Virus record (IMG/VR): IMGVR_UViG_3300028393_000019
Span: 124,001-188,000 of that record
Strand: one strand, 5' to 3'
DNA: 64,000 bases
Positions within the stretch are counted from its first letter, which is position 1. Each line of letters begins with the position of its first letter. Below are positions 43,615 to 57,196 of this stretch, piece by piece. The notes under the pieces were generated by a model. The model was given only the letters and a program-made list of their open reading frames with translations. It was not told the DNA's origin and ran no database searches. Made by a program: the position numbers and the translations under genes.

Positions 43615-45657
43615 ATGTTAAAGAAACTCATCCTAAGCCCGTGGACTGCACTGCTGACTCTAGTGTTGGTAGTGGGCATACGCATTGCAGATCCCTCATT
43701 TGTTGAAAGCGTACGACTACGCTATTTTGATACATTAATTGTAAACAAAGAACCAACATTTAATAATATTATCACGGTCAACATAGACGAAGCTAGTCTA
43801 GACAAATACGGCCAATGGCCACTACCAAGGGTTAACTATGCTGAAATTATTGAAGACCTTTATCATCGTAATGCTGGCCTTGTTGTGCTTAACGTGCTCA
43901 TGGCTGAGCGTGATCGTACTGGTGGAGATAGGGATCTGGCCTCCACTCTTAAACATTATCCGGTAATACTTCCTAGCGTTCCCAGTAATCAAACAAAGAA
44001 TACACCACGTGTTCCAGGCAGTGCTGTACTAGCACCAGAATGGTTAGATCAAATTGTTCAGTATCCTGGACTTGTTGCCAACATCTCAAGTTTAGAAAAT
44101 AGTGCGGCCGGTGTTGGTATTGTAAACACGCTACCAGAGATAGATGGTGTCAATCGTCGTATGCCTTTGATTGTGTCAGTTGACGGCAAACTTTATCCAT
44201 CAATGAGTTTAGAAACTCTGCGTGTGGCCGCAGGTGACACAACATTCCAAGTTAAGTTGTTTGAAGGTGGCGTTGAGAAAATGCGTATCCCCAAGTTTGG
44301 GCCTGTGACTACAGATAATCTGGGGCGTGTTTGGATTGATTGGAGTCAACAAAATCGTAGTTTTAGTTTGATTAACTTACCCAAAGATTTAGAAGGTGCT
44401 GTTGTTATAGTAGGACCTACAGCCGCAGGTATCGGTAATCCGTTACCAACTAGCAAAGGCGCAATATGGCCTCATGATGTACAAGCCGCTGTTATTGGCA
44501 CAATGATGAATGGAGTTGTTATACAACGGCCTGATTGGGCAGACGGTGCAGAAATATTGGGCTTATTGACCGCAGGTATTTTATTATTATTTTTAACAAG
44601 GTGGACTTATGTTGGTATTGGCGCAGGTGTTGTTATTATTGGCTCTATTATTCCTCTATGTGGACTCGCATATAGCAGTGGCTTACAACTCGTGGATGCG
44701 ACTGTTCCGGTCGGGGGCCTTGTTTTGGTTATGCTTCACGCTTATGGTGTTAAGTTTGTAAGTGAATACTTACAGAAACAAGCAATCAAGAAACAGTTTG
44801 CTGGCTATTGCAGTAAGGAAGTAGTCGAACTACTACAAAAAGATCCAGACTTGATCAAGCGTGGTGTACGTAAAGACGTAAGTGTCATGTTCAGTGATCT
44901 ACGTGGCTTTACTCCTATTGGTGAACATTACGGAGATGATGTTGCTGGCTTGGGCAAGTATATGAACGGATACATGGACAGCATTAGTCGTCCCATGCTA
45001 GATAATAATGGAATGATTATCAAGTACGTAGGCGATGCAAGTATGCACATACACGGTGCCCCTATTGAAGATCCTAATCACGCTAGAACAATAGTTGCTG
45101 TTGGACTTGAAATGCTAGACAAAGTAGACGAGTATACTAACATTATGGAAGCACAAGGATTGCCACCAGCCGCAATGGGTTGGGGTTGTAACTCAGGTAT
45201 TGGCTTTATCGGTGAGATGGGTTCAACAGAACGACACAGCTATGACATCTTGGGTGACATGGTTTCAACTGCGGCACGACTAGAAGCACGTTGTAAAGCA
45301 TATGGTGTATTGTGTATTATTGGTGCTGAAACATACAACCGTACTAAGGATGATTTCTTCTACTTGTATTTGGATAACTTACAACCAAAAGGTAAAACTG
45401 TAGCAGATGCTATCTATACAGCATTACGAACCAAAGGCAACGACTACAGTAAAGAACTTGCCACACACAATAAGATGCATATCCTGTACAAAGAAAAACA
45501 ATTTGATGCGGCTGCTATATTGTGTGGAGAATTGAAAGGCAAGTTTAGCGGACAAATGGACAAGTACTACAAAATGTGGATTGAACGCTGTGCGTTTATG
45601 AAACAGCAAGATCTAGGCGATGATTGGAACGGTGAGTTTATTGCTCACGAGAAATAA
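43615..45657 (+). CDS. CHASE2-domain class III adenylate/guanylate cyclase
   Basis: IDEASL..YGQWP CHASE2 domain, three TMs, FSDLRGFT, KYVGDA, AARLE. Confidence 0.92.
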   Translation: MLKKLILSPWTALLTLVLVVGIRIADPSFVESVRLRYFDTLIVNKEPTFNNIITVNIDEASLDKYGQWPLPRVNYAEIIEDLYHRNAGLVVLNVLMAERDRTGGDRDLASTLKHYPVILPSVPSNQTKNTPRVPGSAVLAPEWLDQIVQYPGLVANISSLENSAAGVGIVNTLPEIDGVNRRMPLIVSVDGKLYPSMSLETLRVAAGDTTFQVKLFEGGVEKMRIPKFGPVTTDNLGRVWIDWSQQNRSFSLINLPKDLEGAVVIVGPTAAGIGNPLPTSKGAIWPHDVQAAVIGTMMNGVVIQRPDWADGAEILGLLTAGILLLFLTRWTYVGIGAGVVIIGSIIPLCGLAYSSGLQLVDATVPVGGLVLVMLHAYGVKFVSEYLQKQAIKKQFAGYCSKEVVELLQKDPDLIKRGVRKDVSVMFSDLRGFTPIGEHYGDDVAGLGKYMNGYMDSISRPMLDNNGMIIKYVGDASMHIHGAPIEDPNHARTIVAVGLEMLDKVDEYTNIMEAQGLPPAAMGWGCNSGIGFIGEMGSTERHSYDILGDMVSTAARLEARCKAYGVLCIIGAETYNRTKDDFFYLYLDNLQPKGKTVADAIYTALRTKGNDYSKELATHNKMHILYKEKQFDAAAILCGELKGKFSGQMDKYYKMWIERCAFMKQQDLGDDWNGEFIAHEK

Positions 45658-47262: not shown

Positions 47263-47598
47263 TTATTTTTTATTTTTGATATTGTCAGCTTCGTCCATGG
47301 CATCATGGAACTTGACGTTGGCTTGTGCTTCCACTATGGCAGTTTCCATAACACGATCTGATTCGATCATCTTGCCACGAATGGTCAGCACTGTGTTGAC
47401 TTTTTGATTCAAACGAATTAGGTCATTGTCCAACATGCGTACACGATCTATCAGTGCGATAAGCACAGTGTTGGCATCGTTGATAACAGGCTTGATTTCT
47501 TTGGTTGCCCATTCCCACACATACTTGATAATGAAACCCATTCCCACAGCCATTACTATGGGAAATCCGTACTTGTTGACTAGATCTACTACATCCAT
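47263..47598 (-). CDS. membrane protein (holin-like), paralog of 47925..48206
   Basis: GFP + TM + coiled coil; DRVRMLDNDLIR vs DNRVKTMNHDVIR. Confidence 0.65.
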   Translation of the reverse strand: MDVVDLVNKYGFPIVMAVGMGFIIKYVWEWATKEIKPVINDANTVLIALIDRVRMLDNDLIRLNQKVNTVLTIRGKMIESDRVMETAIVEAQANVKFHDAMDEADNIKNKK

Positions 47599-47738
47599 TA
47601 CAGCACCTTACCTAATACATATCCCACTACAAACACAATAGCACAGAATTTTAATAAATCTCTATCAGTCCAAATCTGATGATCGATACCAAATTCTGCT
47701 ATGCTTTGCGGCATTCTGTTTATTTTTTGTTTATTCAT
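47598..47738 (-). CDS. 46-aa membrane peptide (not in ORF track)
   Basis: MNKQKINR...KFCAIVFVVGYVLGKVL; coupled on both sides. Confidence 0.5.
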   Translation of the reverse strand: MNKQKINRMPQSIAEFGIDHQIWTDRDLLKFCAIVFVVGYVLGKVL

Positions 47739-47925
47739 TGCAGTTCACCTTGTGTCCTCGAGCAAATTGCTCTACTGGGTCCAACTTGACTAGCATACTA
47801 CGGCCGTCACGATTGACAACTTTGAAACAGTCGCCATGTTTCCAGCCCAGTGCATCTATGTTTAATTCGGGGTCAAACTTGATGTACTCGGGCTCTAGGT
47901 CCCAGTCGTAATCGTAATGCCTCAT
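47731..47925 (-). CDS. hypothetical protein
   Basis: Coupled ORF (TAATG). Confidence 0.6.
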   Translation of the reverse strand: MRHYDYDWDLEPEYIKFDPELNIDALGWKHGDCFKVVNRDGRSMLVKLDPVEQFARGHKVNCNE

Positions 47926-48206
47926 TAATCTCTCCTTGCATCGTTCTTGCCGTCTGCACGGCTGATACGGTCTACATCTGGCCGTAAGCCGAGAGCATTT
48001 GATACAATAGTGTCAATGCGGATTACATCATGGTTCATGGTTTTTACACGATTATCAAGTGCTGTGATAATACCAGCCATGCCCTTTACGCTACTAAGGA
48101 CACCTGCCAGTAACAACTTGATCGTTAGATACACAAAATAGCCGCCTGCTAGTGCTGCCGCGACAGGAAACCCAAGGTCCCCGATGATTTTGAAAATTTC
48201 GCCCAT
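47925..48206 (-). CDS. membrane protein (holin-like)
   Basis: LGFPVAAALAGGYFVY TM followed by coiled coil; TAAATA upstream. Confidence 0.65.
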   Translation of the reverse strand: MGEIFKIIGDLGFPVAAALAGGYFVYLTIKLLLAGVLSSVKGMAGIITALDNRVKTMNHDVIRIDTIVSNALGLRPDVDRISRADGKNDARRD

Positions 48207-48259
48207 TTCCGATTCGCTCCCGGTATAAAAGTATTTATGCTATTTCTAGCCAAAATGCA

Positions 48260-48288
48260 TTGCTATCTTGCTAGAAAGGATATATAAT
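48260..48288 (+). promoter_or_regulatory. sigma70-type promoter for the small basic ORFs and tmRNA
   Basis: TTGCTA-17-TATAAT. Confidence 0.65.
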
Positions 48289-48312
48289 ACTAACTGTACA
48301 AAGGAGAGCACT

Positions 48313-48420
48313 ATGCCGAGTCCTCGTAGAGTTTCGCAAATTTTAAAAGGTAAAAAACCACCTAGGCCAAAGACTGTAAAAGCTATGGCTAAACGGGTAG
48401 TCAGGAGAAAATCAAAATGA
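48313..48420 (+). CDS. 35-aa highly basic peptide
   Basis: AAGGAG RBS; MPSPRRVSQILKGKKPPRPKTVKAMAKRVVRRKSK. Confidence 0.65.
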   Translation: MPSPRRVSQILKGKKPPRPKTVKAMAKRVVRRKSK

Positions 48421-48488
48421 CACAAGGTCGCGTAAAATCAGTCAAAGCTAGAGCCAAACGTGCAACTCGTAAAGCACGTAACAAGTAA
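48417..48488 (+). CDS. 23-aa highly basic peptide
   Basis: AGGAG RBS, ATGA overlap; MTQGRVKSVKARAKRATRKARNK. Confidence 0.6.
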   Translation: MTQGRVKSVKARAKRATRKARNK

Positions 48489-48494
48489 TAGCAA

Positions 48495-48841
48495 AAGAAT
48501 TGTTGTACAAGCCTTAAAGTAAGGCATTCTGGACGCGGGTTCGACTCCCGCCAGGTCCACCATAAGCATATTAGGTCGTTGAGTTAAAAAGTCGCATGTG
48601 ATGCGCTCAGACTAAAATAGTATGCTTTTGATGGGCCTGCCATGGTTTCGACAGGGTGAGATAGGATAAAGGTCAACACGTGGGGTCACGTAAAATACAA
48701 ATAAAGTAAATGCAAAAGCAAATACATTCGAGTATTTCCAAGTTCCTGTAACATTAGCTACTGCTAATGATGCAGAATTTGCAATCGCAGCCTAAGAAAC
48801 TGCACTCGCGAGGTAGGACTTACCTTGTCATCAAAACAACC
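48495..48841 (+). ncRNA. ssrA: two-piece (circularly permuted) tmRNA
   Basis: Acceptor piece ends GCGGGTTCGACTCCCGC-CAGGTCC-ACCA (48562); coding piece starts GGGCCTG (48633) giving G3:U70; tag frame ends ANDAEFAIAA-stop (48795); outer ends approximate. Confidence 0.9.
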
Positions 48842-48868
48842 AAAAAGGCACTTTCGAGTGCCTTTTTT
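48842..48868 (+). terminator. intrinsic terminator after tmRNA
   Basis: AAAAAGGCACT-TTCG-AGTGCCTTTTTT. Confidence 0.88.
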
Positions 48869-48869
48869 A

Positions 48870-48898
48870 TTGACCAGTAAACAATTTGCATATATAAT
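48870..48898 (+). promoter_or_regulatory. sigma70-type promoter
   Basis: TTGACC-17-TATAAT. Confidence 0.7.
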
Positions 48899-48944
48899 AG
48901 GGTACTGTGTAAAAACAGTCATTTTAATTAAAAGGAAGTAAAAC

Positions 48945-49397
48945 ATGAAGAAAATTGCAATCGCAACCCTATTGGCCCTAGCGGCCGCAACAGCCAGTGC
49001 TGTAGAAGTTGGCGTCAACGGATCGTACGATTACGGTTCACCAACCCAACGTCCAGGTGCAGGTATCACAATCGGTCAGAAATATGACAAGTTTGGTGTC
49101 ACTGCTGGATTTGATCGTTACTCAAAAGGTACAGATCAAAACAAGTGGACACTGGTTGGTTCATATGATGTGTATTCAGTCGGTGCCGCAACGTTCGCAG
49201 TCAAAGCTGGTGCCGCATATTTGGACAACTATGGTAATGTTGCTGATGGTTATGCTGGTCTAGTTGGCACAGGTGTCAGCTATGCAGTTGCTAAGAATGT
49301 TGCATTGACAGCAGACTATCGCTATCAGTTCGGCCAGTCACGTGTTAACCAATTTGATGGCAACACAATTTCTACAGGCATCAAGGTCTCATTCTAA
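48945..49397 (+). CDS. small outer-membrane beta-barrel protein (OmpA/Ail-like)
   Basis: Signal peptide, alternating beta strands, C-terminal Phe. Confidence 0.8.
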   Translation: MKKIAIATLLALAAATASAVEVGVNGSYDYGSPTQRPGAGITIGQKYDKFGVTAGFDRYSKGTDQNKWTLVGSYDVYSVGAATFAVKAGAAYLDNYGNVADGYAGLVGTGVSYAVAKNVALTADYRYQFGQSRVNQFDGNTISTGIKVSF

Positions 49398-49417
49398 TTT
49401 TTAATTAGAAAAACATC

Positions 49418-49440
49418 AAGGGACCTTAGGGTCCTTTTTT
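49418..49440 (+). terminator. intrinsic terminator
   Basis: AAGGGACC-TTAG-GGTCCTTTTTT. Confidence 0.85.
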
Positions 49441-49487
49441 GTTAATGGAAAATATTGTGGCGATTTTGCCACATTATCACTAGGTTC

Positions 49488-49516
49488 TTGACAAGTGATA
49501 TAAATACATATATAAT
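49488..49516 (+). promoter_or_regulatory. sigma70-type promoter P1 of the tRNA region (TATAAATA within the spacer)
   Basis: TTGACA-17-TATAAT. Confidence 0.8.
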
Positions 49517-49587
49517 AGAAGCTGTGTTAGAGATGCTTCGTTAAAAAAGTTTGTTGTCCAAAAACAACAAAAAGATTTACAAAGTAG

Positions 49588-49616
49588 TTGACAACAACGT
49601 CGAGAGGCGTTATAAT
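49588..49616 (+). promoter_or_regulatory. sigma70-type promoter P2 of the tRNA region
   Basis: TTGACA-17-TATAAT, 100 bp after P1. Confidence 0.85.
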
Positions 49617-49675
49617 TAACACATGAACTAGCAATTCCGCTAGTAAAAACAAAAAGGTTTAAAAGAGAAAACAAA

Positions 49676-49825
49676 ATGCAATCTTGCAATAGACATCATC
49701 AGTTTAATACGATGCCCAAACAGGTAGGCGTTATAGCCTCTTATTGGTCAGCGATTAACGGCGGAAGTCTGTCATTAGATCGTACACCAGAGATTACAAG
49801 GGTCCGGGAGGGCTGGGATGACTAG
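49676..49825 (+). CDS. putative 49-aa attenuator leader peptide containing all 20 amino acids
   Basis: MQSCNRHHQFNTMPKQVGVIASYWSAINGGSLSLDRTPEITRVREGWDD; A-rich initiation region; overlaps the antiterminator strand. Confidence 0.65.
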   Translation: MQSCNRHHQFNTMPKQVGVIASYWSAINGGSLSLDRTPEITRVREGWDD

Positions 49826-49893
49826 GTAACAACTTAGAAACATTTCAAAACTTCAAGGACCCTAGGATTAAAACCCTGGGGTTTTTTGTTTTT
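49799..49893 (+). terminator. attenuator: antiterminator (49799-49805/49857-49863) versus terminator (49857-49866/49875-49884 + U-tract)
   Basis: AGGGTCC is complementary to GGACCCT; GGACCCTAGG pairs with CCTGGGGTTT, followed by TTTGTTTTT. Confidence 0.75.
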
Positions 49894-49905
49894 AGGAAAG
49901 GAAAA

Positions 49906-50082
49906 ATGGAACAGATAGATTACGAAAAATTAAATCAACGCATTGTTGAACAGGCTTATGAAACTGCTTTTGGTCCTACATTGGATAAAGAACAGCTTCA
50001 AAAACTTATTCAAGATAAGTTTGAACGTGCTAGAAAATATCACGAAGCGTTAGCGAAAGCACCGACGTTCAGTGTAAACTAG
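49906..50082 (+). CDS. 58-aa hypothetical protein directly after the attenuator (not in ORF track)
   Basis: AGGAAAGG RBS; MEQIDYEKLNQRIVEQAYETAFG... Confidence 0.6.
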   Translation: MEQIDYEKLNQRIVEQAYETAFGPTLDKEQLQKLIQDKFERARKYHEALAKAPTFSVN

Positions 50083-50088
50083 TACAAC

Positions 50089-50258
50089 GTGTGAAGATAC
50101 CAGTAACGAGGACTGGGCCCTGCACGTAAAACATGGGGCGAACGGGCGGCCTATCGGATGGAACTCCTCTTCTGGAGCTAAAAATGGTAGCGTATCGAAG
50201 CATTCTCGGGCCGATAGAGGCAAGTGGGTTCATCCATGTAGAATGCTTCGATACACAC
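50089..50258 (+). ncRNA. candidate structured RNA
   Basis: Perfect 15-bp stem 50192-50206/50240-50254; CTATCGG 50151 pairs with CCGATAG 50211 inside its loop; further hairpins. Confidence 0.55.
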
Positions 50259-50283
50259 TTTCCAACACTACCTGAAATAGTGC

Positions 50284-50312
50284 TTGACATAGTCAACGGA
50301 GAGTGTTAAAAT
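50284..50312 (+). promoter_or_regulatory. sigma70-type promoter before tRNA-Tyr
   Basis: TTGACA-17-TAAAAT. Confidence 0.6.
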
Positions 50313-50320
50313 TAAAATCT

Positions 50321-50409
50321 GGAAGTGTGCGCTGAATTGGTTGAAGGCAACGGACTGTAAATCCGCCACATAAGAAACATTGTTGGTTCGAATCCAACCA
50401 CTTCCACCA
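50321..50409 (+). tRNA. tRNA-Tyr(GTA)
   Basis: Cloverleaf, long variable arm, encoded CCA. Confidence 0.92.
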
Positions 50410-50414
50410 AATTT

Positions 50415-50489
50415 GGTCCTGTCATATAGTGGTTATTATACCGGCCTGTCTAGTCGGATATCGGGGTTCGATTCCCCGCAGGATCGCCA
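50415..50489 (+). tRNA. tRNA-Asp(GTC)
   Basis: CCGGC-CTGTCTA-GTCGG arm, CCA. Confidence 0.92.
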
Positions 50490-50497
50490 AGTATATT

Positions 50498-50574
50498 CGG
50501 AGTGTAGCGCAGTCTGGTAGCGCACCTGGTTTGGGACCAGGGGGTCCAAGGTTCGAATCCTTGTACTCCGACCA
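50498..50574 (+). tRNA. tRNA-Pro(TGG)
   Basis: CCTGG-TTTGGGA-CCAGG arm, CCA. Confidence 0.95.
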
Positions 50575-50581
50575 ATTTTAT

Positions 50582-50656
50582 GCACGGTTCGTCTATCGGT
50601 TAGGACACTGGCCTTTCACGTCAGTAAGACGGGTTCGATTCCCGTACCGTGTACCA
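50582..50656 (+). tRNA. tRNA-Glu(TTC)
   Basis: CTGGC-CTTTCAC-GTCAG arm, CCA. Confidence 0.93.
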
Positions 50657-50659
50657 AGA

Positions 50660-50841
50660 ACGTTCCGCTTTGTTAGCGGATACTGTGACCCGCAGGATGG
50701 GAAGTGAGGTGACTCTCAAGGGTGGTTCTAGTCTTACCGAACTAGCGTTAGCAACACGATAGCGGTCCCTGTCGGGAAGCGGGTGGAGGGCATGCGTGAT
50801 GGACCTAGTCCTGATGTGCTATAATTACCGCCGAGGGATGT
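50660..50841 (+). ncRNA. candidate structured RNA
   Basis: GC-rich; closing ACGTTCC/GGGATGT; ACCCGC 50688/GCGGGT 50779; several hairpins. Confidence 0.55.
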
Positions 50842-50851
50842 CAGAGCTTTT

Positions 50852-50925
50852 CCTCTTGTAGTTAAATGGTATAACAGTCGGCTGATAACCGGCCATTACA
50901 AGTTCGATTCTTGTCGAGAGGACCA
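50852..50925 (+). tRNA. tRNA-Ile(GAT)
   Basis: GTCGG-CTGATAA-CCGGC arm, CCA. Confidence 0.92.
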
Positions 50926-50953
50926 ATTTTTAACAAAGAACAAAGGAAATGTT

Positions 50954-51331
50954 ATGTCATATAGTGACTGGAATAACTCTGCTAAAATAGCAGACATGGT
51001 AGGTAAAACTTTTACAAGTGTAAAAGCAGATGGCAACGAGTTGGTGTTTGAAAACAGCGTGGATCGTTATGTGTTCTTTCATGCACAAGATTGTTGCGAA
51101 CATGTGCGCATTGAAGACATCGCGGGCGACTTGAGCGACCTAGAAGGTGAACCTTTAGTAATAGCAGACGAAGTTGAAGGTGAAAGCCCAGCTGACTTTG
51201 AAGCATACGAAAGTTACACTTGGACATTTTACAAGTTCGCTACTCGCAAGGGCTATGTGGACGTGAGATGGCTAGGAGAAAGCAACGGGTACTACAGCGA
51301 AAGCGTAAACCTAGGATACGAAACAGTTTAA
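50954..51331 (+). CDS. acidic hypothetical phage protein
   Basis: AAGGA RBS; HAQDCCE ... WTFYK ... SNGYYSE. Confidence 0.8.
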   Translation: MSYSDWNNSAKIADMVGKTFTSVKADGNELVFENSVDRYVFFHAQDCCEHVRIEDIAGDLSDLEGEPLVIADEVEGESPADFEAYESYTWTFYKFATRKGYVDVRWLGESNGYYSESVNLGYETV

Positions 51332-51381
51332 TTTTATAAAAGGAGATCTGTCATGACCAGTGACAAGAGTGATAAGATGAT

Positions 51382-51456
51382 GGGGGTATAACTTAACGGC
51401 TAAAGTAGCGGGCTTTTAACCCGTAAATCAGAGTTCGATTCTCTGTGCCCCTACCA
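51382..51456 (+). tRNA. tRNA-Lys(TTT)
   Basis: GCGGG-CTTTTAA-CCCGT arm, CCA. Confidence 0.92.
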
Positions 51457-51553
51457 TATAAAAACATACTGGATCTTCTAGTGGACTAAGACGCTGGCAA
51501 ATAGGTCGGTGAACGTGGTGTTCAAATCCCACTCTAGTGTGTTTCTATATGGT
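51453..51553 (+). ncRNA. tRNA-like element on a ~20-bp closing stem, lacking CCA
   Basis: D-like arm TCTT..AGTGG..AAGA, T-like arm GTGG-TGTTCAAATC-CCAC, non-canonical anticodon loop. Confidence 0.55.
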
Positions 51554-51631
51554 ATTACTTGTAGATAAATCGAGATTGTTTTTTAATCTCTTTAATCTTT
51601 TTCCTATACTTGAAACGGATGTATAAAGATT

Positions 51632-52435
51632 TTAAAAATGCAAACATTTAATCTTCTCAGCTAGATCTTTGGCTATTAGATCGTGTCCGGATTGCGTAAA
51701 ATGCCATTGGGGCAAGTAGTCAGCATTTGTTATTTCTTCCAAAGATTTAGCAGTTAGTTTAAAGTCATAAAACTCTTTTAACAACTGCTGTTGGATATCA
51801 TTTAACAAGATTGGATCTTTTTCATTCACTATTAGATCGACCTCTTGCCCTTTTAGGTGCGGTTCTTCCAAAGGTTGATTTAACTTAGTAGGCGAGATAC
51901 GTAACAGATAACAGGGTATATTTTTAGAACGAAGTAGTCTTACAGCATATAGCACAGACACATAGTCTTCAACCATCGTAAGCGATTCGTTAAAAAATTC
52001 AAGAAAGAATTCTTGCATGATATTGTTTTGTCTACTATTTAAAAAATGAGTCGGCCAGTTTGGTTGTAGAACTGCACTGTTTACTAGGTTATTTGAATAA
52101 TTCACTAGTAGTCGATTATGAGTAGTCATTTGAATCACTGCTACAGTATCATCGTAGTGGTTTTCAGGAAATTTTAAAATAGCTCGCATAGCTATTTCTT
52201 TATTGGAAATACCTCGTAGGGCAATATTTTCAATCTCTGCATTGAGTAGATTGCCTACCAATGATGGGTAACAATATTGTTTATTATATTCGTTTATTTG
52301 TTCATCGGATGCAGACCTAGTAGCTTTACCAGCTTGAAACACATTCATAGCGGTGTATTGGGGGACGAATTTTTCTTCCCATAGCTCTGTACCAGCGGTA
52401 ATACTGCATCCTGCGAAAACGATTTTTTTAATCAT
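51632..52435 (-). CDS. SGNH-hydrolase-like hypothetical protein inserted antisense in the tRNA array
   Basis: GCSITAG, NIALRGISN, HFTQSGH. Confidence 0.7.
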   Translation of the reverse strand: MIKKIVFAGCSITAGTELWEEKFVPQYTAMNVFQAGKATRSASDEQINEYNKQYCYPSLVGNLLNAEIENIALRGISNKEIAMRAILKFPENHYDDTVAVIQMTTHNRLLVNYSNNLVNSAVLQPNWPTHFLNSRQNNIMQEFFLEFFNESLTMVEDYVSVLYAVRLLRSKNIPCYLLRISPTKLNQPLEEPHLKGQEVDLIVNEKDPILLNDIQQQLLKEFYDFKLTAKSLEEITNADYLPQWHFTQSGHDLIAKDLAEKIKCLHF

Positions 52436-52462
52436 AGTAAAATATTTATTATAATTTTTTAC

Positions 52463-52538
52463 AGTAGAGTAGCATAGCGGCTAATGCACCACCTTCATAC
52501 GGTGTTTATCGTGGGTTCGAGTCCCACCTCTACTACCA
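52463..52538 (+). tRNA. tRNA-Met(CAT) (elongator Met, or Ile2 if lysidine-modified)
   Basis: CACC-TTCATAC-GGTG arm, paired 1-72, CCA. Confidence 0.88.
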
Positions 52539-52542
52539 AATT

Positions 52543-52618
52543 GGAAGTTTAGCTCAGCTGGTAGAGCGTCTGCCTTACACGCAGAATGTCGGCGGTTCGA
52601 TCCCGTCAACTTCCACCA
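52543..52618 (+). tRNA. tRNA-Val(TAC)
   Basis: TCTGC-CTTACAC-GCAGA arm, CCA. Confidence 0.95.
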
Positions 52619-52624
52619 AACTGT

Positions 52625-52698
52625 TGGGGGTTAGTTAAATGGTATAACCGCGGATTTTGATTCCGCTATTAAAGGTTCGATTCCTTTACCCTCTGCCA
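52625..52698 (+). tRNA. tRNA-Gln(TTG)
   Basis: GCGGA-TTTTGAT-TCCGC arm, CCA. Confidence 0.92.
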
Positions 52699-52704
52699 AT
52701 CAAT

Positions 52705-52780
52705 GGTGTCTTTAGTGTAGTGGCCTGCACCCTGCTCTGTGAAAGCGGTAGTACCGGATCGATACCGGTAAGGCACCCCA
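52705..52780 (+). tRNA. tRNA-His(GTG)
   Basis: G-1/C73; CTGCT-CTGTGAA-AGCGG arm, CCA. Confidence 0.92.
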
Positions 52781-52785
52781 AACAT

Positions 52786-52861
52786 GCTACTTTAGCTGAT
52801 GTGGTCATAGCGGCGGTCTGAAGAACCGTTGAACCAGGTTCGATTCCTGGAGGTAGCACCA
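52786..52861 (+). tRNA. tRNA-Phe(GAA)
   Basis: GCGGT-CTGAAGA-ACCGT arm, CCA. Confidence 0.93.
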
Positions 52862-52864
52862 AGT

Positions 52865-53064
52865 TTTGTAAGTGTTAGCAAGAGAAAGTCACGCTGTCTA
52901 GGTTTCTTCGAAGGACCGAAACAGTAGAAGGTGATGGGTTCGACACCCACTAGGTCCATTGAGGCGACTAAACTGGACAAGTATTCCAAGTAACTTATCC
53001 TGACCCTGCCGGCTCAATTACAAGGGAAAATGGTTGCGATGAGAGGGACGCAACAACTTACAAA
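52865..53064 (+). ncRNA. candidate structured RNA (~200 nt)
   Basis: Closing TTTGTAAGT/ACTTACAAA; internal UUCG hairpin and T-loop-like GGGTTCGACACCC. Confidence 0.55.
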
Positions 53065-53126
53065 TTCAACAGACCCCCGCTTTGTCAGGTTGTGCGGTAA
53101 ACAATCTGACACTTACTAAGTAATTG

Positions 53127-53368
53127 TATTAGTAAAAGATTTAAGGTGTGATAGTGTTTCGCAAGAACTTTGAGGATGCCGGAAGCGTTCAAAGAGGATA
53201 GTTATAGACTATAACACTGATTGGCAGATAGAGTTGGGTATTGTTTTCAGCATTGACCCAACAGTCGATCACGCATTCCATGTTAGGCGAGACCAAAAGA
53301 GCAGATCTGAAAAGTCTGGGTCGCCACTGCTAACGCAAAACCAAAACTCTGTGAATCTTTTACTAATA
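53127..53368 (+). ncRNA. candidate structured RNA (~240 nt)
   Basis: Perfect 15-bp closing stem 53127-53141/53354-53368; many internal hairpins with GNRA loops. Confidence 0.6.
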
Positions 53369-53375
53369 TCTTTAT

Positions 53376-53451
53376 GCGGGCGTAGCTCAGTTGGTAGAGC
53401 ATTACCTTGCCAAGGTAAATGTCGAGAGTTCGAACCTCTTCGCCCGCTCCA
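53376..53451 (+). tRNA. tRNA-Gly(GCC)
   Basis: Cloverleaf, U73, CCA. Confidence 0.95.
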
Positions 53452-53505
53452 AATTATGGCTCCTAGACTTGTTCACATAGTGTCCCCTGGGAGTTTTTCT
53501 TTTAT

Positions 53506-53595
53506 GCCCGGGTGGCGAAATTGGTAGACGCACTTCTCTCAAAAGGAAGAAGGAAAAACACCTAGTTGTGAGTTCGAATCTCATCCCGGGCACCA
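53506..53595 (+). tRNA. tRNA-Leu(CAA)
   Basis: CTTCT-CTCAAAA-GGAAG arm, long variable arm, CCA. Confidence 0.9.
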
Positions 53596-53597
53596 AT

Positions 53598-53689
53598 GCC
53601 AGCGAGACTTGACAGTCAGAGAGGTTTTATAAACCTTTTAGCGCCAGATTAGCGTTCTTGAGAGGGTTTGATTCCCTCCGCTGGTACCA
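53598..53689 (+). tRNA. atypical tRNA with TAT anticodon (nominally Ile)
   Basis: GCCAGCG/CGCTGGT-ACCA; GAGGT-TTTATAA-ACCTT arm; short D-arm; long variable arm; TTTGA T-loop. Confidence 0.75.
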
Positions 53690-53690
53690 C

Positions 53691-53764
53691 GCTCTTATAA
53701 TTTAATGGTAGAATGCCTCCTTGGTATGGAGGCAATGATGGTTCGATTCCCTCTAAGAGCACCA
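53691..53764 (+). tRNA. tRNA-Thr(GGT)
   Basis: CCTCC-TTGGTAT-GGAGG arm, CCA. Confidence 0.88.
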
Positions 53765-53769
53765 AACAC

Positions 53770-53844
53770 CTGGCTATAGTACAATGGATAGTACAATGAG
53801 CTTCTACCTCATGAATGTGGGTTCGATTCCTGCTAGCCGGACCA
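53770..53844 (+). tRNA. tRNA-Arg(TCT)
   Basis: ATGAG-CTTCTAC-CTCAT arm, CCA. Confidence 0.92.
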
Positions 53845-53852
53845 ATCAATAT

Positions 53853-53927
53853 CGGCCATTGGTGAAATGGATATCATCTCTGTCTTCGAAACAGAGGGTG
53901 TGGGTTCGATTCCTGCATGGCCGGCCA
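53853..53927 (+). tRNA. tRNA-Arg(TCG)
   Basis: TCTGT-CTTCGAA-ACAGA arm, CCA. Confidence 0.92.
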
Positions 53928-53956
53928 CGATAAGTCAAATATATTTCACAAAGATG

Positions 53957-53985
53957 TTGACACACAGCATCAGATGTTGTATAAT
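53957..53985 (+). promoter_or_regulatory. internal sigma70-type promoter of the tRNA array
   Basis: TTGACA-17-TATAAT. Confidence 0.85.
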
Positions 53986-54012
53986 AGTTGTATACTAGGC
54001 AACTGGTACAAT

Positions 54013-54024
54013 AGTTCTTTAAAA
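54013..54024 (+). promoter_or_regulatory. boxA-like antitermination element
   Basis: AGTTCTTTAAAA resembles rrn boxA TGCTCTTTAACA; lies between the promoter and the next tRNA. Confidence 0.5.
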
Positions 54025-54038
54025 AATTAAAAGCAAAT

Positions 54039-54121
54039 GCCCCGATGGTGGAATTGGTAGACACGCTGGTCTTAGAAGCCAGTGCGCAAGCGTCCGAGTT
54101 CGAGTCTCGGTTGGGGCACCA
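54039..54121 (+). tRNA. tRNA-Leu(TAG)
   Basis: CTGGT-CTTAGAA-GCCAG arm, CCA. Confidence 0.93.
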
Positions 54122-54246
54122 TATAAATGCTTTCTGAGTAGCTACAGTGGAACACCGAAATACCGGTCAATGTCGACCATGTACCGGGACCGGCCATGAA
54201 GAGTGGGGCTACCGTGGATTCAAGCGCCACAGAGAGCACCTATATG
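54120..54246 (+). ncRNA. candidate structured RNA
   Basis: Closing CATATA..TGCTTTCTG/CAGAGAGCA..TATATG; T-loop-like GTGG-ATTCAAGCG-CCAC. Confidence 0.5.
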
Positions 54247-54311
54247 ATCGAGTCTTGGACACGCAGACTTTAAAACGAGGTGGAAGTAGGTGGAAGCCCT
54301 ACACCTAATAT

Positions 54312-54385
54312 CGCGGGATAGAGTAACGGTAATTCAGAAGTCTCATAAGCTTCAGATCTTGGTTCGATTCCAGGTCCCGCTACCA
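54312..54385 (+). tRNA. initiator-like tRNA-Met(CAT)
   Basis: C1 mismatched with position 72; CTCATAA loop; lacks the three G-C anticodon-stem pairs. Confidence 0.85.
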
Positions 54386-54391
54386 AATAGA

Positions 54392-54481
54392 GGAAATGTG
54401 GCAGAGTCCGGTTTATTGCAACAGTCTTGAAAACTGTCGAGTCGAAAGGCTCCGTGAGTTCGAATCTCACCGTTTCCGCCA
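54392..54481 (+). tRNA. tRNA-Ser(TGA)
   Basis: Long variable arm, G73, CCA. Confidence 0.93.
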
Positions 54482-54487
54482 AGTTGA

Positions 54488-54561
54488 GTCTCATTAGTAT
54501 AATGGCAGTATAGCGGTCTCCAAAACCGTTGGTCGGGGTTCGAGTCCCTGGTGGGACGCCA
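54488..54561 (+). tRNA. tRNA-Trp(CCA)
   Basis: GCGGT-CTCCAAA-ACCGT arm, CCA. Confidence 0.92.
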
Positions 54562-54571
54562 AATGTCAATT

Positions 54572-54655
54572 GCGAGAGTGGAGAAATGGTATACTCAAGA
54601 GACTTAAAATCTCTCGTCGAAAGGCATGCGGGTTCGAGTCCCGCTTCTCGCACCA
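54572..54655 (+). tRNA. tRNA-Leu(TAA)
   Basis: AGAGA-CTTAAAA-TCTCT arm, CCA. Confidence 0.93.
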
Positions 54656-54674
54656 TTCATAAAGGAGATGTAGT

Positions 54675-54818
54675 ATGTCAAAAAGAGAAGATGTTCTAAA
54701 CAAGGCATACGGCAACGTGCCTCGTGAAATTGGATTTAGCATAGTATGGGATTTCCTGCCAACTTGGCGCGGTGTGCGATACTACTGGCATAAATTAATA
54801 CGTAAGATAACAAGATAA
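54675..54818 (+). CDS. 47-aa hypothetical protein (not in ORF track)
   Basis: AAGGAG RBS; MSKREDVLNKAYGNVPREIG... Confidence 0.6.
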   Translation: MSKREDVLNKAYGNVPREIGFSIVWDFLPTWRGVRYYWHKLIRKITR

Positions 54819-54824
54819 GCAAAA

Positions 54825-54912
54825 GGATAGTTGGCCGAGTGGTTAAGGCAACGGTTTGCTAAACCGTCGTTCCGAAAGGGGCGCATAGGTTCGAATCCTA
54901 TACTATCCGCCA
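54825..54912 (+). tRNA. tRNA-Ser(GCT)
   Basis: Long variable arm, G73, CCA. Confidence 0.93.
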
Positions 54913-54959
54913 GTACATAGGAGATATACTCTCCGCCATTTTTTAAAAAGAGAAAAACT

Positions 54960-55181
54960 ATGATGAAACCAGGCAAGACGTTCAATTTGAACAAACAAAC
55001 CAAACGCTTTATGGCCACGTTTGTGAACGCAGAAGATCGTAATCATTTCAAACGCATGATGATCGATGCACAACTGTGCAGTGAAGTTGTTATCAAGAGT
55101 GCACCGCGTGACAAGAATGCACCGCGTGGTACTGCCAACTATCAAACTAACGATACAGGTACAGCAAGTACCGCAGTATAA
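54960..55181 (+). CDS. hypothetical protein
   Basis: 73-aa ORF between tRNAs. Confidence 0.65.
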   Translation: MMKPGKTFNLNKQTKRFMATFVNAEDRNHFKRMMIDAQLCSEVVIKSAPRDKNAPRGTANYQTNDTGTASTAV

Positions 55182-55190
55182 AAGCATTAT

Positions 55191-55266
55191 TCCGCAGTAG
55201 CTCAGTCGGTAGAGTAGATGACTGTTAATCATTTGGTCGGTGGTTCGAGCCCACCCTGTGGAGCCA
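55191..55266 (+). tRNA. tRNA-Asn(GTT)
   Basis: Cloverleaf, CTGTTAA loop, CCA. Confidence 0.95.
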
Positions 55267-55271
55267 GGATT

Positions 55272-55347
55272 GGGGGATTAGCTCATTTGGGAGAGCACCT
55301 GCTTTGCAAGCAGGGGGTGGTCGGTTCGATCCCGACATCCTCCACCA
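55272..55347 (+). tRNA. tRNA-Ala(TGC)
   Basis: G3:U70, TTTGCAA loop, CCA. Confidence 0.95.
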
Positions 55348-55399
55348 AGATCACCATTACACACGGTGTACAATAGGATAAGTAGTGTGTAACAAATTT

Positions 55400-55475
55400 G
55401 CCGGTTTAGCTCATTTGGTAGAGCGCCGCTCTTGTAAGGCGGATGTGGTCAGTTCGATTCCGACAACCGGCACCA
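55400..55475 (+). tRNA. tRNA-Thr(TGT)
   Basis: CCGCT-CTTGTAA-GGCGG arm, CCA. Confidence 0.94.
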
Positions 55476-55479
55476 AGTT

Positions 55480-55770
55480 TAAACATATTGAAATCTGTAA
55501 AAAGATCAGGTTTGGTATCCCAGTCACTATGATAGGCATAGCCCATATACTCAATACACCACAATATGTTTATTCGTTTCCCGGGACTACTGGCCGTAAC
55601 CCAAGTAGCGTAATTACAGTAACGATAACTGTACGGTGCATTGGATCTACCGCAAGGCCCGCTATATGGGCGACTTGAGAAATCACAAAGGCAGAGCACT
55701 AACTGTCTATATGGAAACATGCGGTACGGACACCAAGCCTAGTCTAGGGCATTCGGGAGAGTGTAACTAG
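55480..55770 (+). ncRNA. candidate pseudoknotted RNA
   Basis: 11-bp stem 55480-55490/55562-55572; loop GCCCATATA (55541) complementary to TATATGGGC (55663). Confidence 0.55.
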
Positions 55771-55771
55771 A

Positions 55772-55866
55772 CACTTTAATCAAACACACTTAGCCTAGCT
55801 ATAAGCTAGGTTGCAAGGACCACACACCATCTTAGAAAAAAGTGTTAAGTGTGTTTGATTAAAGTG
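55772..55866. repeat. 23-bp inverted repeat abutting tRNA-Gly
   Basis: CACTTTAATCAAACACACTTAGC / GTTAAGTGTGTTTGATTAAAGTG (one G:U). Confidence 0.85.
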
Positions 55867-55939
55867 CGGGATTAGTTTAATGGTAAAACAGCAGATTTCC
55901 AATCTTCGGTCAAGAGTTCGATTCTCTTATCCCGCTCCA
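55866..55939 (+). tRNA. tRNA-Gly(TCC)
   Basis: TTTCCAA loop, U73, CCA. Confidence 0.9.
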
Positions 55940-55959
55940 ATTTTTAAAAAGGAAAACAA

Positions 55960-56220
55960 ATGAAAGCAAGTCATATTTTGGTAGCCACACGTGAACAAGC
56001 TGATGCAATCTTGGCTGAAGCAACTGCATTGAATTTTGGATCACTTGCACAGCAGTACAGCTCATGCCCCAGTAAAGCACGTGGTGGCGACTTGGGCGAT
56101 TTCGGCCCAGGTCAAATGGTCAAGCCGTTTGAAGATGCTACTGTGGCAACAGCAGTTGGTGCTATTAGCCAGCCAGTGCAAACACAATTTGGTTTTCACT
56201 TGATCCATCGCACTGGATGA
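55960..56220 (+). CDS. ppiC: parvulin peptidyl-prolyl isomerase
   Basis: ASHILV, SSCPS...GGDLG.F..GQMV..FE, TQFGFHLI. Confidence 0.93.
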   Translation: MKASHILVATREQADAILAEATALNFGSLAQQYSSCPSKARGGDLGDFGPGQMVKPFEDATVATAVGAISQPVQTQFGFHLIHRTG

Positions 56221-56777
56221 TAATAGATTCAAACGATCTTTGCCGCAAGTATGATTACAGTAGTTTGATCTCAGCTACCGAAAACGACACAGCCATAGGC
56301 ATTATCAAAAGTATAATCGAAAGCGGCAACTACTTTAAAAACTCGCCTCCGTTTCAAACACAGGAAAATTTGTTTGGCAGATCCGAGGCAGTTTGGTTGA
56401 AATATCGTATGACATTTTTGACCAGTGTGTTTTTATATTTGGGACACGAAGCCAGAGTCAGCAACATGATGGCTTGGAGTTTTATGACCAATTTGAGCAC
56501 AGTAGAAGATCGTGACAAATATTGGCATCATCATGACAAACATTCGGGCAAAAGCCTAAGCGGAATCATGTACTTGCACATCCCCGACGATGTGAAGGAT
56601 TTTGACACATGTGGCACCGAACTGGCACCCAATGGGCCAGAGTCTCCTGGCAAATTTTTTGTACGACCCAGTTACTGCTCGTGGATTATCTATCCCAGCA
56701 ACATTTGGCATAGACCAGGTATTGTGCAAAGTGACAAATATCGATTTATTTTAGCCGCAGACGTTGACTACGAGTAA
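56217..56777 (+). CDS. putative 2OG-Fe(II) oxygenase
   Basis: WHHH, SGIMYL, YPS.IWH, R..LA. Confidence 0.7.
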   Translation: MIIDSNDLCRKYDYSSLISATENDTAIGIIKSIIESGNYFKNSPPFQTQENLFGRSEAVWLKYRMTFLTSVFLYLGHEARVSNMMAWSFMTNLSTVEDRDKYWHHHDKHSGKSLSGIMYLHIPDDVKDFDTCGTELAPNGPESPGKFFVRPSYCSWIIYPSNIWHRPGIVQSDKYRFILAADVDYE

Positions 56778-56792
56778 AATAGATGTTATAAT
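56764..56792 (+). promoter_or_regulatory. sigma70-type promoter
   Basis: TTGACT-17-TATAAT. Confidence 0.75.
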
Positions 56793-56813
56793 AACGTTTT
56801 AACGGAGATATCA

Positions 56814-57047
56814 ATGCGAAATACAACACTTAGCCGTGGTCCAGAAATTGACAGAGAACTGTGCTGTAGCAAAATGGGGACTGGTATGTATGATCTTGTT
56901 CTGGCAGCCACAGCTCGAGCAAGAGAGATCCGTCGTCAGCATAGAAGCAGTGAGTCATATGAGCATATCTATCCAATAGTAACTGCTATACTGGAAATCC
57001 AACAAGGCAAGATTGATCCAAAAGAGTATCTCAAACGAGTACGTTAA
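56814..57047 (+). CDS. rpoZ: RNA polymerase omega subunit-like protein
   Basis: YDLVLAATARAREI ... PIVTAILEIQQGKI matches the omega motifs. Confidence 0.75.
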   Translation: MRNTTLSRGPEIDRELCCSKMGTGMYDLVLAATARAREIRRQHRSSESYEHIYPIVTAILEIQQGKIDPKEYLKRVR

Positions 57048-57052
57048 TTCGT

Positions 57053-57130
57053 GCAACGGTGGCAGAGCGGCCCAATGCACCGGATTGCAAATCCGTAAAA
57101 CCGGGGGTTCAAATCCCTCCCGTTGCTCCA
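57053..57130 (+). tRNA. tRNA-Cys(GCA)
   Basis: CGGA-TTGCAAA-TCCG arm, U73, CCA. Confidence 0.92.
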
Positions 57131-57140
57131 TAAATAACAC

Positions 57141-57169
57141 TTGACATCTATGGTAATAGGTGTTATAAT
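57141..57169 (+). promoter_or_regulatory. sigma70-type promoter
   Basis: TTGACA-17-TATAAT. Confidence 0.8.
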
Positions 57170-57196
57170 TTTATTTTAAGAAATCAAGGAGCAGAA

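Follow-up and report, generated by a model that had tools for sequence, protein, structure and literature searches.

Genomic Context of the Short ORF

We analyzed a 64,000-nt window from IMG/VR virus record IMGVR_UViG_3300028393_000019 (positions 124,001 to 188,000 of that record), in which 28 same-strand tRNA genes covering all 20 amino acids are preceded by two sigma70 promoters, a short ORF, and an intrinsic terminator (table 1). An earlier note, made from the sequence alone, had proposed that this arrangement is an attenuator that senses all tRNAs, and every element that it listed is present. The ORF uses 36 distinct codons, including the Arg codons AGA, CGT, AGG, and CGG and the Ile codon ATA, and has all 20 amino acids by codon 39. 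Each amino acid occurs 1–5 times and there is no run of codons for any one of them. The RNA from 49623 to 49905 folds far better than shuffled sequences (z = -5.1), and its minimum-energy fold contains the long hairpin rather than the terminator hairpin. The note's two caveats that the Shine-Dalgarno is weak (GAG about 10 nt upstream of the ATG) and that a promoter-like site precedes the first tRNA gene and can bypass the element are also correct.

Table 1. Features at the Head of the tRNA Array (Window Coordinates)
Feature	Position	Strand	Description
Promoter P1	49488..49516	+	TTGACA, 17 nt, TATAAT; 12/12 consensus; distal one of a tandem pair
Promoter P2	49588..49616	+	TTGACA, 17 nt, TATAAT; 12/12 consensus; inferred start of transcription near 49623
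5'-proximal hairpin	49627..49644	+	ACTAGC / GCTAGT; predicted in the leader transcript
Leader ORF	49676..49825	+	49 codons plus TAG; starts 59 nt after the -10 box of P2
Antiterminator (predicted three-tier hairpin)	49799..49863	+	-29.3 kcal/mol; 5' half holds codons 42-49 and the stop codon; AGGGTCC (49799-49805) is the exact reverse complement of the 3' arm GGACCCT (49857-49863)
Intrinsic terminator (predicted)	49855..49893	+	Hairpin at 49855-49886 (-11.6 kcal/mol) sharing GGACCCT with the antiterminator, then a run of T interrupted by one G
Small gene	49906..50082	+	58 aa; strong Shine-Dalgarno 12 nt after the terminator
Structured noncoding RNA candidate	50083..50283	+	Between the attenuator and the first tRNA
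Extra promoter	50284..50312	+	TTGACA, 17 nt, TAAAAT, with TG; 11/12; 8 nt before tRNA-Tyr
tRNA array	50321..57130	+	28 tRNA genes; presumed regulated genes

For the single ORF, the presence of all 20 amino acids is not more than chance. All 20 occur in 4 of 83 window ORFs of 45–53 aa and in 22 of 981 such ORFs in related loci, and a composition model gives 2.5% of random 49-mers.

Distribution and Conservation of the Leader

The ORF belongs to a family, here referred to as family A, that was found on 59 IMG/VR phage contigs in 44 distinct versions. Its length stays at 47–53 codons, the ATG is invariant, and no version has an in-frame stop. The ORF nearly always sits behind two consensus sigma70 promoters: the -10 box of P2 ends 46–66 nt before the ATG in all 42 distinct relatives, and a second promoter about 100 nt farther upstream is conserved in nearly all of them. 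In every locus with enough downstream sequence, the element stands at the 5' edge of a same-strand tRNA array, with 24–39 tRNA genes following within 10 kb, none on the other strand, and 0–2 upstream. More distant relatives, which were not detected by tblastn and include a group that we refer to as family B as well as other subfamilies, keep the same architecture with 28–43-codon ORFs. In family B and the other subfamilies the dense array starts 8–640 nt after the element. Some distant relatives are leaderless, and in distant relatives the ORF starts 6–8 nt after the -10 box.

No close or distant DNA relatives were found among 50,697 deposited phage genomes, in which only tRNA genes matched, and tblastn searches with the family A and family B peptides likewise gave nothing, leaving no cultured relative. 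Ralstonia phage RP31, reached through a DUF7448 protein, has no tRNA array at that place, and DUF7448 is too widespread to serve as a guide. No copy of the leader was found in representative bacterial and archaeal genomes, and prophages thus give no hint of the host. Rfam has no match at the leader, and the peptide has no match in Pfam or PHROGs.

The ORF carries a coding signature. Gaps in the ORF body of the nucleotide alignment are multiples of three, pN/pS is 0.46, and synonymous variation is seen, with Leu32 using five codons, Ser3 three, and Gly18 and Arg37 two each. Therefore, although the transcript is strongly structured and its nucleotide conservation is high, it is very unlikely that the element is a noncoding small RNA with an incidental ORF, particularly as amino acid composition (see below) can only be selected through translation.

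Alternative Hairpins and the Position of the Stop Codon

In 43 distinct family A versions the long hairpin (-19 to -29 kcal/mol) and the weaker terminator (-10.7 to -13 kcal/mol) share GGACCCY, and in all 43 the stop codon lies 21–28 nt after the start of the 5' arm and 26–35 nt before the shared arm. The same layout holds in all other subfamilies with different sequences; there, the stop codon lies 11–34 nt inside the 5' half and in one case 2 nt before it. The long hairpin is the more stable of the two in all versions. Notably, the hairpin arm is read in two different reading frames in different lineages, yet the stop stays 20–27 nt into the hairpin.

RNAalifold on a plain sequence alignment of the 3' part found only the terminator because the variable apex of the long hairpin was misaligned. 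We, therefore, used a covariance model, with the caveat that an alignment fitted to a model leans toward that structure. In this alignment, 95.1% of cells are paired and 11 of 19 pairs carry compensatory changes (55 such cells), a result reached by none of 500 shuffles, whereas slid controls pair 27–55%. The model matches only this site in the window. The terminator, which is supported by sequence only, is nearly invariant in 42 relatives and consequently gives no covariation either way. The arms of the 5'-proximal hairpin differ between relatives while pairing is kept (CAGC/GCTG, AAGC/GCTT, and others), as judged by eye. We found no convincing counterpart of the trp 1:2 (pause/anti-antiterminator) hairpin: the long-range fold that RNAalifold proposes for the ORF body, pairing the start region with codons 35–37, has only 3 pairs with compensatory changes and a covariation term of -1.4, and nothing is predicted to pair with the 5' arm of the antiterminator.

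An alternative possibility is that the ORF encodes a small protein acting in trans, with the hairpin and terminator simply ending and stabilizing its short mRNA and the position before the tRNA array reflecting synteny. Twenty invariant peptide columns, the pN/pS value, and the predicted highly structured transcript of about 270 nt from P2 to the terminator are compatible with this, and leader peptides with trans functions are known (peTrpL; PMC7968998, PMC7298713). However, this explanation, which we regard as unlikely, does not account for the reading of the C-terminal tail in different frames while the stop stays in place, for the sharing of the terminator's 5' arm with a stronger upstream hairpin, or for the composition of the peptides described next.

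Maintenance of All 20 Amino Acids

Among the 44 distinct family A versions, 40 contain all 20 amino acids, whereas a tree-aware null gives 18.1±6.4 with a maximum of 37 in 3000 runs. Rare residues relocate: Cys sits at column 4, 22, 29, or 41, nearly mutually exclusively, and Tyr sits at 23, at 34, or as an inserted codon at 41. In family B, 24 of 27 distinct peptides (all but one 33–41 aa) have all 20, against a chance of 0.19% for 36 aa. Further leaders of 32, 39, 43, and 46 codons also have all 20, whereas leaders of 28, 35, and 41 codons have 19. In an unbiased list of 1443 distinct 28–45-aa ORFs in six frames, only 9 have all 20, and eight of those are these leaders. Thus, for the family, in contrast to the single ORF, the composition is overwhelmingly more than chance, and composition rather than sequence appears to be the selected trait.

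In family A the set is complete at codon 35–40 in 38 of 44 versions, before the hairpin arm begins at codon 40–44. However, some residues that complete the set lie where a stalled ribosome should already cover the hairpin arm, and a simple occlusion model cannot sense them. These are Glu in invariant TPEI, usually the last of the 20 and only 2–3 codons before the arm, Val or Gly in family B tails, and Cys41 or Tyr41 in a few family A members.

The family A peptide is also much more conserved than a pure composition sensor needs. Its motifs FNTMPKQ and DRTPEI are invariant and many codons are invariant even at synonymous sites, indicating that RNA structure, codon identity, or the nascent peptide is constrained as well. 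This could point to the same parts working with the opposite sign or to a peptide-specific arrest in response to some ligand or factor, as with TnaC, SecM, or Erm leaders, the all-20 composition being secondary. We consider this improbable because the conserved motifs are absent from family B and the other subfamilies, which keep the architecture and the composition.

The leader uses codons that the phage itself rarely uses, with an adaptation index of 0.60 against 0.76±0.05, lower than 99.8% of gene windows, which would make it slow to decode. Leader codons are not tuned to the phage's own anticodons: Watson–Crick matches are 0.42 against 0.51 in other phage genes, wobble matches are 0.83 against 0.85, and invariant CCC and GCC are not read by phage tRNAs under strict wobble. 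Nor does a missing amino acid track a missing tRNA in the two testable cases, as the rare leaders that lack Cys or Val retain the matching tRNA gene; too little of the array is covered by sequence at the locus whose leader lacks Lys to tell.

The lack of codon tuning, the absence of regulatory codon runs, the existence of leaderless relatives in which initiation itself could be regulated, and the stability of the long hairpin, about twice that of the terminator, which would make read-through the default without a ribosome, would also fit a general sensor of translation capacity or ribosome–polymerase coupling that responds, for example, to host shut-off, ribosome shortage, or time after infection. 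A pure coupling sensor, however, has no need for all 20 amino acids, and we find this alternative unlikely, although it is the strongest of those considered.

A Model for Attenuation of the tRNA Operon

Taken together, the comparative evidence supports the interpretation in the earlier note, and we propose, with a probability of about 0.72, that the element is a ribosome-mediated transcription attenuator that gates the tRNA operon and whose leader samples every aminoacyl-tRNA. In this model, which in the absence of experiments rests on the inference that the ORF is translated, host RNA polymerase starts at the two strong promoters and a ribosome follows it on the leader ORF. If decoding is fast, the ribosome is already inside the 5' half of the long hairpin, or sits on the stop codon within it, when GGACCCT is made; that arm is then free to pair with CCCTGGGG, the terminator forms, and transcription ends near 49893. 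If the ribosome is delayed at any codon upstream of the hairpin by a scarce, uncharged, or cleaved aminoacyl-tRNA, the more stable long hairpin would form first, lock up GGACCCT, and allow the polymerase to read on. The direction of the switch and the physiological signal are likewise inferred. Dependence on read-through is supported by the finding that only about 8 of 42 distinct relatives have a consensus-like promoter between the terminator and the first tRNA, making the possibility of bypass weaker than the earlier note feared, although such a promoter is present in the window itself.

It is more likely than not that this is a previously undescribed attenuator design, occurring in uncultured large phages as a diverse superfamily with SD-led, GTG-started, and leaderless forms of 28–67 codons, that integrates the decoding speed of every aminoacyl-tRNA pool. 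If so, the phage could switch on its own tRNA set whenever host tRNAs are depleted, degraded, or cut by tRNA-targeting defense nucleases. Phage tRNA genes have been described as a counter to tRNA-cleaving defense systems (PMC10264068, PMC11555353, PMC11464382), which gives a reason for such a switch, but these papers describe the tRNAs and the nucleases rather than control of the phage tRNA genes, and PMC10264068 does not contain the words attenuator, leader, terminator, or promoter. To our knowledge, and in the literature searched, the element is undescribed and would be the first regulatory mechanism for phage tRNA arrays, the function of which (codon supply, host tRNA degradation, or escape from anticodon nucleases) is under active debate. 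A 150-nt part reporting shortage of any aminoacyl-tRNA would also be a useful sensor for cell-free and synthetic-biology work, and the composition signature can be searched for in any genome.

As in the leader-peptide attenuators of amino acid biosynthetic operons (trp, his, leu, thr, phe, ilv), a promoter-proximal short ORF precedes an intrinsic terminator whose 5' arm can instead pair with an upstream segment, and the position of the leading ribosome would decide which hairpin forms. Leader-peptide attenuation has been known for fifty years, with every known case reading one amino acid or a small related group; here, there is at least one codon for each of the 20 in most versions, the regulated genes would be viral tRNA genes, the stop codon lies inside the antiterminator's own 5' half in family A, some members are leaderless, and, without a clear 1:2 hairpin, the untranslated state would be read-through rather than superattenuation. 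T-box riboswitches also report on tRNA charging by transcription attenuation and control genes of the translation supply chain, but they bind one specific uncharged tRNA directly, through a specifier codon and the T-box bulge, without a ribosome, and no T-box match and no other cis-regulatory match of note was found at E<=1 in 47500–58000. In the pyrBI and pyrE (rph-pyrE) attenuators, the signal is, as would be the case here, the distance between polymerase and the first ribosome on a leader ORF without special amino acid bias; however, that ORF runs into the terminator, so that tight coupling gives read-through, and the signal is UTP-dependent pausing, whereas here the ORF stops 26–47 nt before the terminator arm in all versions and the predicted sign is the reverse. 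Stringent control (ppGpp/DksA) of host tRNA and rRNA promoters also couples tRNA transcription to aminoacyl-tRNA supply, but it acts at initiation through RelA and a small molecule and lowers tRNA synthesis when decoding stalls, whereas this element would act after initiation, needs no dedicated protein, and would raise tRNA synthesis.

Sequences between the Terminator and the tRNA Array

The first gene of the read-through transcript encodes a small protein without a Pfam or PHROG match, and a homologous 48–58 aa ORF starts 8–16 nt after the terminator in about 30 of 42 relatives. The region that follows has no Rfam match, and a blastn search with it found nothing among the deposited phage genomes, but it is homologous in about all family A loci, and RNAalifold predicts a structure of 25 pairs, 20 of them with compensatory changes.

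Genomic Context of the Leader ORF

The window is identical to part of a 265,680-bp IMG/VR viral contig and to a second contig of 133 kb, and it has no close relative among deposited phage genomes. It carries a ribonucleotide reductase, a full-length DnaK/Hsp70 homologue and a CHASE2-domain nucleotide cyclase, and a tmRNA gene that ARAGORN flags as permuted and that matches both the permuted and the betaproteobacterial models in Rfam. The tmRNA gene lies about 800 nt upstream of the leader, and a tmRNA is also found 0.8–6.7 kb upstream in several relatives. Between the tmRNA and the leader lies an ORF with a signal-peptide-like start, weak matches to outer-membrane beta-barrel families (OmpA_membrane, Porin_2, Opacity) and its own terminator; this ORF was seen only in the window's own contigs. 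The leader element is followed by 28 tRNA genes on the + strand that cover all 20 amino acids. One of these is called by ARAGORN as a tRNA-Ile with anticodon TAT at position 31, whereas its best match in Rfam is a sub-threshold tRNA-Sec hit; it is unusually long for an Ile tRNA and would be the decoder of the invariant ATA codon of the leader.

Coordinates of features in the window
Feature	Coordinates	Size
DnaK/Hsp70 homologue and CHASE2-domain nucleotide cyclase	30358-32271 and 43615-45657	
tmRNA gene	48450-48869	
ORF with weak matches to outer-membrane beta-barrel families	48945-49397	150 aa
Terminator of that ORF	49418-49437	
Leader transcript as folded, from the inferred start	about 49623 to 49905	
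Leader ORF body with possible long-range fold	49676-49790	
Long hairpin	49799-49863	
Small basic ORF after the terminator	49906-50082	58 aa
Structured non-coding RNA (candidate)	50083-50283	
Segment whose homologue carries a variable insert	50192-50254	
Consensus-like promoter before the first tRNA	50284	
tRNA-Ile (anticodon TAT)	53598-53689	92 nt
P-loop kinase, dual-specificity-type phosphatase and calcineurin-like phosphoesterase	57573-59190	

The earlier note had described two sigma70 promoters, a 49-codon ORF containing all 20 amino acids, a 7-nt complementarity and a terminator, and all of these are present where the note had placed them. Both promoters score 12/12, the ORF has all 20 amino acids by codon 39 and uses 36 different codons, the complementarity is AGGGTCC/GGACCCT, and the terminator hairpin is followed by a T-run. 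The RNA from the inferred start of transcription folds much better than shuffled controls (z = -5.1), and its best fold contains the long hairpin rather than the terminator. A single ORF with all 20 amino acids is, however, not remarkable, as about 2–5% of ORFs of this length have this property. The question therefore had to be settled with relatives.

Identification of Family A

To identify relatives of the leader, we searched IMG/VR first with a 22-nt motif from the ORF and then with a degenerate protein pattern, which resulted in 59 loci representing 44 distinct nucleotide versions. We refer to this group, which is the window's own, as family A. In every locus with enough sequence, the ORF is followed on the same strand by a large tRNA array, with 24–39 tRNA genes within 10 kb and none on the other strand, whereas upstream there is nothing but an occasional tmRNA or one tRNA-Arg. 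Two tandem consensus promoters precede the ORF in nearly all versions, with -10 boxes ending about 57 and 157 nt before the ATG. In three relatives (loci L195, L202, and L215) a single tRNA-Arg gene sits 139–214 nt upstream of the leader ATG; in L195 and L215 only one upstream promoter was found, so the tRNA gene takes the place of the distal promoter, whereas L202 still has two. A consensus-like promoter between the terminator and the first tRNA, like the one in the window, exists in only about 8 of 42 distinct versions. In most relatives, the first tRNA genes therefore depend on read-through.

Predicted Alternative Hairpins at the End of the Leader

Folded one by one, all 43 distinct versions form a three-tier hairpin from [A/G]GGGTCC to GGACCC[T/C] (-19 to -29 kcal/mol). 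The 3' arm of this hairpin is the 5' arm of the terminator hairpin (-10.7 to -13 kcal/mol), so the two are mutually exclusive. The stop codon lies 21–24 nt (28 in two cases) after the start of the 5' arm, which places it in the 5' strand of the apical stem, 26–35 nt before the shared arm. To test for covariation, we built a covariance model from 19 sequences and the structure as given and used it to align 42 versions. In this alignment 95.1% of cells pair and 11 of 19 pairs have compensatory changes (55 cells); none of 500 shuffles reaches these values, and sliding the partner by 1–3 columns drops pairing to 27–55%. The alignment was fitted to the model, which favours the structure, but the size of the effect and the individual folds argue that it is real. 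By contrast, the terminator is almost invariant (12 pairs, no change on both sides) and is supported by conservation and form only. Interestingly, in ten versions the 5' arm is read in a different reading frame, in that two extra bases before the arm are offset by one extra base in it, and the stop codon still falls at the same place in the hairpin. What is conserved is where translation ends in the RNA structure, not the C-terminal peptide.

Coding Signature of the Leader ORF

Although there is no direct evidence that the ORF is translated, and its Shine-Dalgarno is weak, the sequence signature is that of a coding region. The ATG is invariant, no version has an in-frame stop, gaps in the ORF body of the nucleotide alignment are multiples of three, pN/pS is 0.46, and synonymous change is free at several codons (Leu32 has five codons). 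Many codons are nevertheless invariant even at synonymous sites, so nucleotides or codon identity are also constrained, and the high conservation of the peptide and of synonymous sites points to a further constraint that we could not identify. RNAalifold pairs the start-codon region (TGCAATC) with codons 35–37 (GATCGYA), and the third base of Ser3 varies together with the Tyr/Leu34 codon; this long-range pairing is a possible fold that hides the start codon, but its covariation is weak. The leader is poor in the codons that the phage prefers, with an index of 0.60 against 0.76±0.05 for 48-codon windows of the phage's own genes. Leader codons are also not better matched to the phage's own tRNAs than other phage genes are, and two invariant codons (CCC and GCC) are not read by phage tRNAs under strict wobble rules. 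A sensor built on this leader would therefore read the combined host and phage pool.

Maintenance of the All-20 Composition

The all-20 composition is a selected trait. Among the 44 distinct versions of family A, 40 contain all 20 amino acids, and the others lack one, namely Cys, Lys, or Val. As a null, we placed the same number of parsimony changes per alignment column on random branches of the family tree; on average 18.1±6.4 tips keep all 20 amino acids, and at most 37 do so in 3000 runs. The tree is from the short element itself and shows signs of recombination between modules, so the P values are rough, although recombination would, if anything, create more untested combinations. Notably, the rare residues move. 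Cys is at column 4, 22, 29, or 41, almost mutually exclusively, and two tips lack it against 11.4 expected, whereas Tyr is at column 23 or 34 or is inserted at 41, and no tip lacks it against 11.8 expected. The few leaders that lack Cys or Val do not lack the matching tRNA gene, whereas only part of the array is known for the one that lacks Lys. We considered that the element might instead encode a small protein acting in trans, be a pure coupling sensor, encode an arrest peptide, or be a non-coding RNA. Each of these readings leaves the maintained all-20 composition, or the fixed stop position, unexplained.

Distant Relatives

Distant relatives provide an independent replicate. The covariance model found weaker hairpin-plus-terminator matches in contigs that share only a neighbouring gene with the window. 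The ORFs that end inside those hairpins are not detectable as homologues by tblastn and are shorter, yet they have all 20 amino acids in 32, 36, 39, and 43 codons, and 19 in 28, 35, and 41 codons. A search with one of these groups, which we refer to as family B, gave 63 loci and 27 distinct peptides, all but one of 33–41 residues; 24 of the 27 have all 20 amino acids and 3 have 19. In the GTG-started versions with the DEGWDG-type tail, Met is present only as the initiator. Chance expectation is 0.04% at 32 residues, 0.19% at 36, 0.4% at 39, and 1% at 43. In an unbiased list of all 1443 distinct ATG-ORFs of 28–45 codons, in six frames of 78 loci, nine have all 20 amino acids, and eight of the nine are these leaders.

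All subfamilies have the same architecture built from different sequences. A strong hairpin (-15 to -30 kcal/mol) shares 3–8 nt with the 5' arm of a weaker terminator (-8 to -14), the stop codon lies 11–34 nt into the hairpin (2 nt before it in one), and the dense tRNA array starts 8–640 nt downstream. Several are leaderless, with the ATG 6–8 nt after a TATAAT box, whereas others start with GTG after a short purine-rich leader. Some family B tails resemble the family A tail (…EGWD…), and the groups are therefore probably very distant homologues rather than independent inventions.

A Proposed Attenuation Mechanism

The element is conserved in more than 120 metagenomic phage loci and, on comparative evidence only, is best explained as a pan-amino-acid leader-peptide attenuator of the phage tRNA operon, in agreement with the interpretation in the earlier note. 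The geometry is that of a leader-peptide attenuator, and the steps that follow, including the direction of the switch, are inferred. A ribosome that has entered the 5' half of the long hairpin, or waits at the stop codon in it, would keep that arm single-stranded and leave the shared arm, 26–47 nt further on, free to form the terminator. A ribosome held up earlier would let the stronger hairpin form as soon as its 3' arm is transcribed, in which case the terminator cannot form, and without any ribosome the result would be read-through. A leader that holds every amino acid would convert a delay at any codon type into more transcription of the tRNA array, which is a demand-driven loop opposite in sign to the host's stringent control. 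The signal could be host tRNA decay, amino-acid shortage, or tRNA-cleaving defence nucleases (PMC10264068, PMC11555353, PMC11464382). In family A the set of 20 is complete at codon 35–40 in 38 of 44 versions, just before the arm starts at codon 40–44, which fits the model. However, the last residue (Glu in invariant TPEI) is only 2–3 codons from the arm, and in family B one residue of the set lies inside the arm. Either the sensing window is wider than simple occlusion suggests, or these residues are not sensed.

The element would work like a trp/his-type attenuator, and it fulfils four structural criteria of that class. It differs from that class in that it is not enriched in one regulatory amino acid, lacks a clear 1:2 hairpin as judged from predicted folds, and would regulate tRNA genes in a virus. 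It is not a T-box (no Rfam match), and it is not a pyrBI-type attenuator, because the ORF ends well before the terminator. Full-text literature searches, which left out most subscription journals and so cannot prove novelty, and a look-up in one key paper found no description of a leader peptide with all 20 amino acids or of any attenuator before phage tRNA genes.

Features Downstream of the Terminator

The small basic ORF that begins 12 nt after the terminator has a strong ribosome-binding site, and a homologous ORF of 48–58 aa is present in about 30 of 42 relatives. It has no family match, and its function is unknown. Between this gene and the first tRNA lies a GC-rich non-coding stretch that is conserved in about all family A loci. 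It is a structured RNA with strong covariation, in which 20 of 25 predicted pairs have compensatory changes on a plain alignment, with a conserved hairpin loop (A/T)AACGAGG, an invariant single strand AAACGGGCGG, and a long helix that holds a variable insert. It has no match in Rfam or in deposited phages, and it is a candidate new phage RNA and the first RNA product of read-through. In three relatives (loci L187, L203, and L223) the variable insert contains GGGGTTCGAATCCCC, which looks like a tRNA T-arm. Directly after the tRNA array come three genes, which encode a P-loop kinase (AAA_33, with a weak PHROG match to polynucleotide kinase), a dual-specificity-type phosphatase, and a calcineurin-like phosphoesterase. 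This set could heal broken RNA ends, which would fit a tRNA-repair theme.
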